Numbered from the stretch's first letter, positions 40,522 to 59,579 are shown. The stretch: DNA of 63,983 bases from Salpingoeca rosetta (GCA_033442325.1 JAWQFM010000014.1:1140901-1204883), one strand, 5' to 3'. A program made the numbers and translations. The notes: generated by a model not told the origin, from the sequence alone.

Positions 40522-43500
40522 ATGGAGCGCCGCCTGTCGAACGTGCGGCCTCTGCCAGAGAAGCAAGCCTTGTCTGGCTGGGCTGAGAAACAGGTCCGTG
40601 TTCGTGCATGTGCACATGTGTGTGTGTGCGTGTGTGTGTGTGCGTGTGTGTGTGTGTGTGTGTGTGTGTGTGCATGTGTGCATGTGTGCATGTGTGTGTG
40701 TGTGTGTGTGTGTNNNNNNNNNNNNNNNNNNNNNNNNNNNNNNNNNNNNNNNNNNNNNNNNNNNNNNNNNNNNNNNNNNNNNNNNNNNNNNNNNNNNNNN
40801 NNNNNNNNNNNNNGTGTGTGTGTGTGTGTGTGTGTGTGTGTGTGTGTGTGTGTGTGTGTGTGTGTGTGTGTGTGTGTGTGTGTGTGTGTGTGTGTGTGTG
40901 TGTGTGTGTGTGTGTGTGTGTGTGTGCGTGCGTGCTTGCTTGAGGTAAAGATCGCTTCCCCCTCCCGTTACAGGCGATCGCATTGAACTTCTTTGGGTGC
41001 GTCATGCTTTGTGTTGGATCTTATGTCGCAATCAAAACGCTGAACGTGCATCTACACATGGTCATGTAACTGGTATACCACGTCAATGCACAGGGTGGCC
41101 CATTCAAATCGTGGAAGAAGCGCTACTTTGTGCTCAACGACCGCGTTCTGCGCTACAGCGCCAACCCCTCAGATGTCAGGCCCAAGGGCATCATCGGTAC
41201 GATCAGCTTGTATGCGGTTGCTGTCGTGGTTGTTGTGTTCGTGGTGTTTGTGTTCGTGGTTGTTCCTATTCATGTACTTGCGCGTGTGTGTTGAGGGGGG
41301 GGGGACTCTGTGATCGTTGTGTTTTTGCTGCAGTGTACCCCAGCGAACCACTTTATCCTCTCTGATCTCATTGTTGGTCTGTGCGTTTCCGATCAACATC
41401 CACATTACCGAAACGCCAGTTGTGGCAAACATCATCAAGGTGGAACCAATGACGCAGCCGAGCGCCTCCTTTGGCCTCAACGTACGTTCACGCCATGCAA
41501 GCAAGCGTCTGCTGCAGCTGCTGTGTTTGCGTTCATGTGTAGGGTCGACTGTCCACTGAGGTTGTTCGCTCGTCAACTTGCCTTGCCCCTCCTTCAAGCT
41601 TCCTCACTCAACCCCCTCCCTCCCCCCCCTCCAAACACGACGCCAAACTTTGCCGCGGTTAGATTGTTACGCGTCAGAAGACGTACCCACTGCGCTTCCC
41701 CGACCTGGGCACCCGCGACCTTTGGCTCGCCACGCTGCAGGTCCGACAATGCAGCACTCTCAATGGCCTGTTGCGATGAGCTGCGTCGTTGCCACCACCA
41801 TCACCCATGTTCCTCATAAACATGCCTCACTAACCTGCCTCGCCAACGCGATTCACAATGTGCCTCGCCCACTTGCCCCACCCGATGACCTGCCTCATCC
41901 ACCTCAACAGAGCCATCTGCCCCGAGACGGCGTGTCGGCGCAAGTTCAGCAGCTGCAGGCCGCATCTGAGCAGCAGCGCCAGGCCCAGCAGCAGCGCCAG
42001 GCCCAGCAGCAGTATGCGCAGCCCCCACCCGCCCAGGCAGCGGCTGCCGCCGGCGGCGGCGGCAAGAAGAACCCGCTGCAGGCGCTGGCTGGCCTGCCAC
42101 AGCAACTGCAGCAACTCATGCAGCAGCAGCAGCAGCACGTGCAGCAGCAGGCACAGGCACAGGGCGGGCAGCTCCCCGCGCAGGTGATGCAGGCACTGCA
42201 AGGGCTGCAGGGCGTGGCCGCACAGAAGGGCCAACAGGCACAGGTGCAGCTGCCGCAACTGCTGCAGATGCTCCAGGGACAAGCAGGCGCGCAGCAGCTC
42301 ATGCAACAGCAGCAGCGGCAGCCACCAAAGCAGGCCCAGCCACTGCGCCGGCCACCAACCGAGGAACAGGACAAGAGCATGCTTCTCGTCAAGTCAAAGA
42401 ACTTTGTACGTCCGCTAGCCTGCCAGTCTCAGTTGCATGCATACGGCATCAGGAAGGTGGTGGTGGTTTGTAGCATTGTCACTTTTCGTTTTGCCAAAGG
42501 GCGACACACGTGTTTGTTGTTAACAATCTCCAGTGAGTGCTAGTGATTTGTACTTGTGGTCGTCCTTACGCTGCCAATCCACCCTCCCCCCCCCCAATCA
42601 CTGCGTGTCGGATTGCACCATCATAAGGGCCCGTACATCCCGTGGACGACGTGCGGTATCGAGGATGAGGTCATGGCCACGCTCGACAGCGTCTTTGACG
42701 CCAACAACGTCACCATCGTCACCGGCCCTCCGTACGTGTTGCATTGCCTCTGCTGGTGGTGGTGGTGGTGGTGCTGGTGGTGGTGGTGCTGGTGGTGGTG
42801 GTGGTGGTGGTGGTGGTGGTGAACAAGTGTTGCGGAAGTGTTGCAGCGAGTGTGTGAGTGAGGATGCGTGTGTGCGTGTGCGTGTGTGAGTGTGTTTGCA
42901 GCACAACTCACAGGCATCTGTGCCTTGTCTGCGTTTGTATTGCGTGTGTGCGCATGTATGCATGTGTGCGCGTGTTGTGACTGCAGTGGGTCTGGCAAGA
43001 GCACGGTTGTGCGCGAATCCTTCGAGGCGCTGCGCCAGTGCCACGCGCCCCAGGCCATGGCCCCGCTGCAGAACTTCCGGTGCGTACAAGCACTGGCGTT
43101 TGCTCTCTGCTTGTGTGTGTGTGTGTGCGCGTGTGTGTGTGCGCGCGTGTGTGTGTGTGTGTGTGCGTGCGTGTGTGTGTGCGTGTGTGTGTGTGCGTGC
43201 GTGTGTGTGTGCGTGTGCGTGTGCGTGTGCGTGTGCGTGTGCGTGTGCGTGTGCGTGTGCGTTGGCCTTGGCAACTTGTCCACACTTGATGTTCAACACC
43301 CTTCACGCCAACCACCCCTCACCCCGCCCGCCCGCTTGCACTGACAGCACAATTGCGCTGATGGTGTGCGACGAGTGCAACCATGTGCGTCTGCTGCCCG
43401 AGGAATGCAAGGAGGAGGCCCTCATCACCGTCTCCCTCCACAACGGCCGCAAGGGGCGCACCAAGTCTGGCTCGTGCACCGTCACCACGGGCAAAGAGCC

Positions 43501-58500: not shown

Positions 58501-59579
58501 GCCACCTCTCATACGCACATGCCGGCGCACGTGCAATTTGTGCATGTGTCCAGATCCAAGCGCTGCTGGACGAAGCAATGAAGGTGACGGCGAACGACGA
58601 GATTGTGTCGAGCGACGCCATGGAGACGCGCCAGTCTGTCCTCAACCAAGTTGCCCACTTCCATGCGTCCAAGGGGAAGTGAGTCGCACGCAACACCCGC
58701 TGATCGCTCGAGGGCGTTGCACGTGCTGTTTGTGCTCAGCGTTGGCTGCGAATGAGTTGACTTGACTTGGCTTGGCTTCCTTCTTCTACTCGCAATCTTC
58801 ACCTCACCCATGTCTGTCCTCTGCCATCCGCACCAGTGTCGACGAAGCTGTCAAGTACATGGATCAGGCGATTGATTCCTGCACGGAATCTGCTGCCGAT
58901 CAGCAGCGCAAGGGCAGCCTCATCGTCAACAAGGGTGAGTCATTGCGTGCGCGCGCGTGCGCATGTGTGTGCATGTGTGTGCCGCGTTGTGAACTTCAAA
59001 GCAAGGTAGTGTGACTCACACCTCGATGATGATGATGATCACACGAAATGTGGCAGGTGTGTTCTACATGAACCAGAATCGCTTCCTGGAGGCGCTGCCC
59101 ATTGAGCTCGAAGCCCACAAGGTTTGACGCCACACGCACACGCACACGCACACGCACACACACGCACACGCACACGCACAACGTTTTGCTTGCACGCATG
59201 TGGCTGTGCGACTCACTTCACGTGGTGTGTTGTTACGCGTACTCTCTTGTGTGTGTGCCTGTCACATCGACAAACAGATGCTTGAAGGTCTTCTCGGAAA
59301 GGACCATCCAGAAGTTGGCAAGGCCGCTGAATGCGTCGCCATCTGCCTGCAGCAGTGCGGCAAGCTGCAGGTGCGTTGTGTTCGCGCGTGAGTGCGTGCG
59401 TGTGCTTGGGAATGGGAAATGACAATACATGATGTGCGTGTGTGTGTGTGTGTGCTGTCAACTTCCCGCCACTATGTAACGCTTCCTGTGCTGTGCTCTG
59501 CCTTCGTGTGCAGGAGTCGACGCCATATGTGCAGCAAGTCAAGCGCATCTCCCAGGGCGCAGGCACCATGTTCCGCTAG
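40522..59579 (+). CDS. Giant STAND NTPase: PH - Q-rich - degenerate NACHT with Cys-rich insert - DUF4062 (TIR-like) - NACHT (NWD1/2-type) - TPR; >50 exons
   Basis: PH GWAEKQ|[24 protein letters not shown]-loop 1 VTIVTGPP|GSGKST. DUF4062 [67 protein letters not shown]|[39 protein letters not shown]|[14 protein letters not shown]|[14 protein letters not shown]-type TPRs [16 protein letters not shown] and [17 protein letters not shown]. The frame can be followed through GT-AG junctions. Confidence 0.85.
40714..40813. other. Assembly gap (100 N) in an intronic TG repeat
   Basis: N run. Confidence 1.
49611..49716. repeat. (GTGCTTGCGT)n 10-bp minisatellite, intronic
   Basis: About 10 tandem copies directly visible. 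Confidence 0.9.

Follow-up and report, generated by a model that had tools for sequence, protein, structure and literature searches.

The proteins that combine a DUF4062 domain with a NACHT NTPase, such as NWD1, NWD2, TEP1 and NPHP3, are poorly understood, and NADase activity of DUF4062 has been reported only in a 2026 preprint. In that work, DUF4062 is a TIR-like NADase family, human TEP1 is an NADase that is active through E1008, and NPHP3 has a DUF4062-adjacent NACHT followed by TPRs (bioRxiv 10.64898/2026.05.01.722283). Choanoflagellate NACHT domains, those of Salpingoeca rosetta and Monosiga, have been found paired only with ANK, TPR or WD40 repeats (Yuen et al. 2014, PMC3879445). Chains with two STAND modules are known, and known to function, among plant tandem NB-ARC NLRs such as wheat WTN1 (bioRxiv 10.1101/2024.08.30.610185); these plant two-NB-ARC proteins were the only tandem STAND cases in the literature searched, and in full-text searches we met neither a PH domain joined to tandem STAND units nor a chain with two NACHT-type modules. 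Here we analyse a 63,983-nucleotide stretch of the Salpingoeca rosetta genome (the window; contig 14:1140901–1204883 of a 55.4-Mb, 68-contig assembly of an intron-dense eukaryote), in which one long gene on the + strand encodes such a protein.

The window carries one expressed gene, in a craspedid choanoflagellate host, that encodes a single chain of about 2,170–2,250 residues. From the N terminus, this chain comprises a PH domain, a Q-rich linker, a degenerate STAND unit with a Cys-rich insert (module 1), a TIR-like DUF4062 domain, an NWD-type NACHT with its HTH_NWD1 domain (module 2) and a helical domain with TPRs (Table 1). Judged by sequence profiles, module 1 is homologous to module 2, and the whole would best be explained as a switch of the NWD or Apaf-1 kind; we give this combined reading a probability of roughly 0.6. 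The architecture is real, conserved and apparently undescribed, and it is built from known parts.

A search with the largest module 1 exon (45660–46190) against 1.84 billion representative proteins returned two long proteins, P0002 (2,171 residues) and P0003 (2,016 residues), plus a cluster of short metagenomic fragments. P0002 is a complete open reading frame (ORF) derived from a transcript of Microstomoeca roanoka, the nearest relative found, and P0003 is an ORF of the same kind from Hartaetosiga balthica. Pfam models placed PH at residues 16–97 of P0002, a bare P-loop at about 216–231, DUF4062 at 905–996, NACHT at 1270–1397, HTH_NWD1 at 1487–1593 and TPRs at 1840–2090. Searching with the region from DUF4062 to NACHT added four further complete transcript ORFs of 2,146–2,230 residues (Salpingoeca infusionum, Mylnosiga fluctuans, Choanoeca perplexa and Stephanoeca diplocostata), with the Pfam layout unchanged; querying word-indexed protein databases with module 1 or a two-sequence profile brought no additional members of the family. 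The architecture is thus kept in seven choanoflagellates, comprising craspedids and the acanthoecid Stephanoeca, and the window gene is collinear with the six transcript ORFs from end to end. Along its entire length the product shares 55% identity with P0002, and it shares 37% with P0003; tblastn of P0002 against the window gave a strictly collinear chain in which residue 1 falls at 40522 and residue 2171 at 59576. Short environmental contigs of 1.7–2.2 kb (P0001 and P0005–P0009; ENA/Logan) hold a fragment 52% identical to window exon 16, which lies in module 1; therefore an uncultured relative carries the same gene.

An earlier interpretation made from the DNA alone (the sequence-only reading) had proposed a PH domain, two tandem P-loop STAND modules with a TIR-like DUF4062 between them and a C-terminal TPR region, in a unicellular holozoan. 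Profiles and structure prediction bear out this layout, the host is a choanoflagellate, all the peptides that it quoted lie on the + strand at or near the positions it gave, and its gene limits are identical to those from our spliced alignment. For the PH domain, the Pfam model matched 41070–41291 (exon 2 alone) with an E value of 1.6e-5 and 25.8 bits against a cut-off of 25.1, and it scored 35.8–48.3 bits in five orthologues, that is, in all but the one from Hartaetosiga, whose ORF it did not match. Exon 2 carries the basic K-x2-K-K-R pattern typical of phosphoinositide-binding PH domains.

The C-terminal two thirds follow the NWD plan. Walker A (GVEGSGKSA, 51516–51542) and Walker B (ILFDGID, 51771–51791, in a peptide that starts at 51759) of module 2 are both canonical, and the sensor-1 strand VLLTVS begins at 52237. 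Exon 31 alone scored 27.2 bits with NPHP3_N (cut-off 24.8) and 23.9 bits with NACHT (E 4.1e-5), nearly passing the NACHT gathering threshold of 26.7 bits (PF05729), and the NACHT model reached 30.5–54.6 bits in module 2 of the orthologues. Over 92% or more of its length, the 341-residue region from DUF4062 to NACHT shares 35–46% identity with more than 100 metazoan NWD1/NWD2 proteins. Further downstream, TPR_12 (E 7.9e-23) and TPR_10 (E 8.5e-15) matched P0002, and TPR_12 matched window exon 49 (E 0.0022); no WD40 model matched P0002 or the other five orthologues, and no Pfam leucine-rich repeat (LRR) model matched the orthologues, the predicted sensor being of the TPR type.

By its sequence, then, module 2 has the NWD1/NWD2-type core (DUF4062, NACHT and HTH_NWD1), with TPRs after it as in NPHP3; core and TPR ending together make up the C-terminal 1,270 residues. 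The protein shares with NWD1 and NWD2 the DUF4062 domain, a conserved region of about 340 residues, the NACHT and HTH_NWD1, all matched by the same Pfam models. It differs from them in that the C terminus has TPRs rather than WD40 propellers, and in some 900 extra N-terminal residues that hold the PH domain, the second STAND module and the Cys-rich insert. Unlike animal NLRs of the NACHT-LRR type, the chain has no LRRs C-terminal to its NACHT, and a TPR instead of an LRR sensor fits the repeat types listed for choanoflagellate NACHTs by Yuen et al. (2014, PMC3879445). The gene shows that this NWD-type core is older than animals; in choanoflagellates it is retained within a larger, fixed architecture that adds a PH domain and a second STAND module undergoing decay. 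Elsewhere in the genome we counted at least seven other HTH_NWD1 loci (among them C4:1700243–1700578, C4:341178–341513, C7:1898248–1898583, C6:1419640–1419975 and C4:2025312–2025647), four of which score near-identically (47.2–47.4 bits), in long uninterrupted frames of 500–1,300 residues. Such frames are unusual for so intron-rich a genome and suggest a recently amplified, intron-poor NWD-like family.

The DUF4062 domain is matched by its Pfam model in window exon 21 and at 28–37 bits in the orthologues, and the crystal chain of the TEP1 TIR domain (11gz_A) matches the region with E values from 1.4e-11 to 2.2e-18. An S-[VI]-T-x-x-E motif recurs in 125 homologues, with Ser, Thr and the last Glu each present in at least 95%; these three residues are invariant in a 24-sequence alignment. 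In the window it reads S-I-T-E-E-E; the invariant glutamate is residue 1097 (49912–49914), separated from S-I-T-E by intron 25. The protein resembles TEP1 in having a TIR-like DUF4062 N-terminal to NACHT, in the 11gz_A match and in this invariant Glu-containing motif; Glu1097 may be the counterpart of TEP1 E1008. It differs from TEP1 in having no TROVE, vWA or WD40 domains and in an insert of about 70 residues, common to NWD1/2, between the RYGY strand and S-x-T-x-x-E. The genome has at least ten more DUF4062 exons outside the window (for example C5:1200373–1200642, C32:350987–351139 and three on C35); therefore the TIR-like family is expanded in this choanoflagellate.

By analogy with these relatives, the C-terminal two thirds would act like NWD1, TEP1, NPHP3 or Apaf-1. 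The TPR region would hold the NACHT off until a ligand or partner binds; nucleotide exchange would then lead to oligomerization and hence to clustered TIR-like domains, which might hydrolyse NAD(P)+, the family-invariant glutamate being present, or else serve as a signalling scaffold or recruit partners. The PH domain, through its predicted lipid binding, would place the protein on phosphoinositide membranes. Module 1 would probably serve as a non-hydrolysing structural, regulatory or additional oligomerization platform, and its zinc-type insert might offer a binding surface.

A serious alternative, if on balance an unlikely one, is that the protein is a constitutive, non-catalytic scaffold like NPHP3 of the ciliary inversin compartment, with no enzymatic or immune role, in which the PH domain replaces the lipid anchor and the TIR-like domain is silent. 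The order DUF4062, NACHT, TPR is that of NPHP3, so that the sequence-only reading erred in calling a TPR after DUF4062-NACHT unusual; NPHP3_N is above its cut-off in the window, and NPHP3_N and TPR_NPHP3 both score on the orthologues. Choanoflagellates bear flagella. The gene is single copy and conserved across choanoflagellates, and is not expanded as typical immune receptors are. In vitro, the purified human proteins NWD1, NWD2 and NPHP3 did not act as NADases (bioRxiv 10.64898/2026.05.01.722283), and therefore the invariant glutamate does not prove catalysis in the window protein. Several features nevertheless argue against this scaffold. TPR_NPHP3 reached 43 bits in P0002, and 17.6–62 bits across the orthologues, against a cut-off of 100; the window protein starts with Met-Glu (MERRLS) and so has no Gly2 myristoylation site. 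Its sequence from DUF4062 to NACHT is closest to NWD1/NWD2, with no NPHP3 among the best 120 matches, and the candidate catalytic glutamate and its surrounding motif are strictly conserved. The N-terminal region of the protein also differs from that of NPHP3.

We modelled module 1 with AlphaFold2 on the corresponding segment of the Microstomoeca orthologue, using a 15-row alignment (predicted local distance difference test, pLDDT, 74); this model replaced a poor first one built from 11 alignment rows (pLDDT 56), for which Apaf-1, Dark, MalT and Avs3 had ranked top and many VIA matches had covered model residues from about 490 to 575 with a winged-helix fold. In VIA comparisons the newer model matched MalT best (Z 15.2, 389/412 residues), followed by the TPR-STAND protein 6mfv (Z 14.8) and NRC2 (Z 14.7). 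Apaf-1 (Z 13.3) aligned over 424 residues, at model positions 3–705, ahead of Cdc6/Orc1 and other AAA+ proteins; NLRP9 (Z 9.6) and NLRP3 (Z 8.8) scored lower. Foldseek put Apaf-1 first (E 1.2e-4). By sequence, phmmer of module 1 against PDB returned chance matches only. As modelled, module 1 is thus a full STAND unit consisting of a nucleotide-binding domain, a helical domain, a winged helix and a further helical domain. The sequence-only reading would have fallen had module 1 not folded as a STAND NTPase; the prediction gives it that fold (MalT Z 15.2, Apaf-1 Z 13.3). The likeness to Apaf-1, MalT and plant NB-ARC proteins extends over the nucleotide-binding, helical, winged-helix and second helical domains, all of which superpose. 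The differences lie in sequence identity (7–14%), the Cys-rich insert of about 150 residues after β2, the degenerate catalytic motifs and the position of module 1 upstream of another complete STAND unit.

The insert is β-rich and is modelled at pLDDT 75–90. Its eight cysteines, arranged as three CxxC motifs and two single Cys (CDEC, CSEC, CSNC, EGLC, QLCQ), are invariant in all seven species, and they probably form two zinc sites.

Sequence profiles built from the seven species tie module 1 to module 2. Aligning the two with hhalign gave two collinear blocks, one of 55 columns covering a helix, the P-loop, a helix and β2 (E 1e-5) and one of 186 columns running from β4 through the helical domain into the winged helix (E 2.8e-6, probability 88%). 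Their scores were 58 and 54, compared with 12–27 for reversed and 20 column-shuffled controls; with three-sequence profiles only 21 P-loop columns aligned. In most orthologues, and in an NWD-like protein of a mollusc, a module 1 hidden Markov model (HMM) also matched the regions of the P-loop and HTH_NWD1. Two motif pairings proposed in the sequence-only reading were recovered by hhalign, namely KFVISL with the sensor-1 strand of module 2 and PPSTVDAGV... with PPTAAGILNELL... at the start of the winged helix; one further pairing between the modules, of 15 protein letters, was not. These profile alignments lead us to conclude that module 1 is homologous to module 2. Internal duplication is the simplest origin and a plausible one, if not proven.

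Module 1 might instead be a STAND or AAA+ unit of another lineage (MalT-, NB-ARC- or Orc/Cdc6-like) that was gained separately by domain shuffling, an account that we regard as doubtful. The structural ranking speaks for it, with MalT, 6mfv, NRC2, Apaf-1 and Cdc6/Orc1 as best matches and the NLRP proteins below them, as do the single-copy status of module 1, which has no paralogue in the genome, and the lack of a Pfam NACHT match above threshold. Single module 1 exons of the window gave no useful Pfam match, and residues 185–900 of P0002 scored 25.4 bits with AAA_16 and 17.3 bits with NACHT (P-loop only), both below threshold. The best NACHT E value among the orthologues, 2.9e-5 in two of them, was also below threshold. 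Against separate gain stand the two collinear profile blocks, which include the NWD-type winged-helix start LP.S....L...LD.L, and the matches of the module 1 HMM to P-loop and HTH_NWD1 regions. The language-model neighbours of module 1 point the same way, being clusters of NPHP3_N and NACHT, together with KAP (0.94; 189/256 shared features), and so do sub-threshold Pfam matches to module 1 that recur across the family, from AAA_16 in seven members, nSTAND_NTPase5 in four, NPHP3_N in three and NACHT in two. The label of a diverged NACHT duplicate given to module 1 in the sequence-only reading is plausible rather than proven; no Pfam threshold backs the NACHT part, and the best structures are MalT, 6mfv, NRC2 and Apaf-1, not NLR NACHTs.

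A predicted sea anemone protein of 3,482 residues (P0016, Actinostola sp.) contains two full tandem DUF4062-to-NACHT units, each with an E value below 1e-100; either this is a genuine tandem NWD protein or the annotation has fused two adjacent genes.

Judged from its motifs, module 1 is degenerate. The window retains a canonical GxxxxGK[ST] Walker A (GPPGSGKST), and in the seven-species alignment Walker A is also intact in Microstomoeca and Stephanoeca. The other four species read GSGKNS (Hartaetosiga), GSGRNT (S. infusionum), GAGVSV (Mylnosiga) and GSGRHT (Choanoeca), so that the lysine is replaced by R, V and R in three of the seven species and Ser/Thr by Asn in two. No canonical Walker B (hhhhD[D/E]; hhhhDGhDE in NACHTs) was found in window module 1. 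The best candidate, GVSPEE, is tentative; at this column four orthologues carry Asp, and the window and Microstomoeca carry Glu. The segment ILFSEDM, which the sequence-only reading took for Walker B, is lineage-specific: three of the six orthologues have nothing aligned to it and S. infusionum has only part of it, and that assignment is probably wrong. Its splice KPCM|ILFSEDM was also rejected: the orthologues read NKAHK|ILFSEDM, with the donor at 44858, a difference of seven residues. In the window, LGLASDKG... lies at 44784, ILFSEDM at 45063, KFVISL at 45759 and PPSTVDAGV at 46122.

With its intact Walker A, module 1 of the window protein may still be able to bind nucleotide. Hydrolysis is unlikely, given the missing canonical Walker B and the loss of the P-loop lysine from three sister species.

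The idea that modules 1 and 2 form a sensor/executor (sensor/helper) STAND pair in one chain, both working as nucleotide switches, is consistent with the presence of two STAND modules per chain, with the intact Walker A of the window, Microstomoeca and Stephanoeca, and with the existence of functional plant tandem NLRs such as WTN1. We consider it improbable. Loss of the Walker A lysine in three of seven species argues against module 1 as an autonomous switch, as do the Ser/Thr-to-Asn changes in two orthologues and the missing canonical Walker B; module 1 also has no sensor repeat domain of its own, and it is far less conserved among species (15–35% identity) than the DUF4062 region (50–64%). 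The protein shares with wheat WTN1 and rice Pib the presence of two STAND nucleotide-binding modules per polypeptide. By contrast, the plant tandem NLRs belong to the NB-ARC clade and have an LRR sensor, whereas in the window protein a TIR-like domain stands between the two modules, of which the first is probably a pseudo-NTPase.

A bolder version of the switch, to which we would lend little credence, is an ancestral membrane-recruited death or immunity switch. Here a pseudo-STAND, derived as an NWD-type NACHT duplicate and carrying the zinc-type insert, would act as an intramolecular latch or decoy that gates oligomerization of the active NACHT–TPR unit and so controls the firing of a TIR-like NADase. 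If true, the closest living relatives of animals would have, in one chain, an analogue of the sensor/helper NLR pairs. The species with the gene include genetically tractable choanoflagellates, which makes them a possible system for studying the function of NWD-type TIR-like domains and for asking how a pseudo-NTPase module regulates a STAND switch.

The gene model was obtained by spliced alignment of the Microstomoeca ORF P0002 to the genome, with 45182–45323 masked with N here and in BLAST. It has 56 exons on the + strand between 40522 and 59579, every intron is GT-AG and there is no internal stop; from the ATG at 40522 to the stop at 59577–59579, 6,513 coding bases encode 2,171 residues as modelled. 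The sequence-only reading had proposed one gene and one chain and had named a split near 47950–48180 as the outcome that would undo it. We examined this stretch, and four lines point to one gene: intron 20 is an in-frame, phase 0 GT-AG intron, and the joined peptide PPSK|... across it is contiguous in all six orthologous transcript ORFs; the open frame leading into exon 21 has no in-frame ATG after the preceding stop; and the word shares of sequencing runs, taken over two stretches, agree with exons only. Specifically, of the words sampled from 47772–48298, a share of 0.47 occurs in 13 RNA-like runs that come from four studies, which equals the exon-only expectation of 0.47 ((144+90)/497, with both exons in and the intron out), and three DNA-like runs contain 1.00. 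Over 44500–52500, RNA-like runs contain 0.25–0.34 of the words, and the exon-only share is 0.31. A separate start at exon 21 would also lose the invariant first strand of DUF4062. That two adjacent genes were merged here, a PH and P-loop gene ending at about 47945 and a DUF4062-NACHT-TPR gene beginning at about 48179, is therefore barely credible: the S. rosetta exon 20–21 junction has no direct read evidence and the genome's own annotated protein is not among the protein-search matches, but the fusion is a single complete ORF with conserved junction sequence in six other choanoflagellate transcriptomes, intron 20 keeps the frame with no ATG upstream of exon 21, and the two flanking exons, but nothing of the intron, are present in the RNA-like runs.

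Some findings count against the reading of one expressed gene with a degenerate, module 2-related STAND unit and an NWD- or Apaf-1-like switch, to which we return here. The run kinds are guesses, and the S. rosetta junction evidence consists of word shares, not of reads spanning 47945|48179 or full-length complementary DNA. The Walker B region of module 1 was modelled at pLDDT below 50, and its assignment is tentative. No tool aligned Glu1097 to TEP1 E1008: the profile alignments end at chain residues 88–94, a search with the C-terminal fragment gave chance matches and a 39-column motif profile gave no match. PH lipid binding, zinc binding by the insert and ligand sensing by the TPRs are predicted only. 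The inactivity of the three purified human proteins belongs here too.

The N-terminal part of the model needs two comments. An assembly gap falls within intron 1 (40594–41093). A hidden exon in the gap was considered and ruled out, as exon 1 (40522–40593, residues 1–24) and exon 2 (41094–41196, residues 25–58) match consecutive residues of the orthologue; no coding sequence is therefore lost and the frame is continuous across the splice, whose peptide SGWAEKQ|... matches the orthologue SGWAEKQGGTFKTWKKRFFVL. Between the PH domain and module 1, a Gln- and Ala-rich open frame of 327 codons (frame 1, 41560–42540) far exceeds the aligned linker of the orthologue in length. Our model was forced to the orthologue length, which makes the exons of 41663–42405 an uncertain stretch; a modelled 90-bp 'intron' at 42244–42333 is in frame, contains no stop and looks coding. 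Because of this Q-rich linker, the model may fall short of the true protein by as many as about 80 residues.

Table 1. Features of the Salpingoeca rosetta gene, in coordinates of the window.
Feature	Coordinates	Strand	Details
Complete coding region	40522..59579	+	tblastn and spliced alignment to P0002
PH domain	40522..41740	+	Exons 1–4, about residues 1–105; basic K-x2-K-K-R signature in exon 2
Assembly gap	40714..40813	.	In a (GT)n microsatellite of intron 1 (40594–41093); (GT)n on both flanks
Gln/Ala-rich low-complexity linker	41741..42627	+	Exons modelled at 42070–42243 and 42334–42405; exon limits uncertain
Module 1, divergent STAND NTPase-like (nucleotide-binding domain, helical, winged helix, helical)	42628..47945	+	Exons 7–20, about residues 184–902
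Module 1 Walker A GPPGSGKST	42724..43005	+	Split by intron 7 (42732–42986) into 42724–42731 and 42987–43005
Cys-rich insert after strand β2 of module 1	43348..44650	+	Seven-species alignment
Candidate degenerate Walker B GVSPEE of module 1	45699..45716	+	MAFFT alignment and low-stringency hhalign; low confidence
Strand β4 (KFVISL) through helical domain to winged helix (PPSTVDAGV...VLDTVFTL...)	45759..46560	+	Block aligning with module 2
Intron 20, between last module 1 exon and first DUF4062 exon	47946..48178	+	GT-AG, phase 0
DUF4062 TIR-like domain	48179..49977	+	Exons 21–26, residues 903 to about 1118
Module 2 NACHT NTPase	51159..52974	+	Exons 30–35
HTH_NWD1 winged helix-turn-helix	52853..53959	+	Exons 35–38; Pfam on exon 36 E 3.5e-5; orthologues 33–54 bits
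C-terminal helical region and TPRs (TPR_12/TPR_10 type)	54178..59576	+	TPRs from about exon 46 (56595); collinear with P0002 residues 1579–2171

The genome's own annotated product for this gene was absent from the matches of the protein searches that we ran, and the public annotation may lack, split or mis-model the gene. The model given here offers an annotation of one gene of 56 exons with exact limits. Nearly all of the window introns between 40594 and 59513 carry long microsatellites of (GT)n, (CA)n or (CACG) type, for example at 40600–40935, 42750–42985, 43100–43290 and 46650–47250, and also at 45182–45323.

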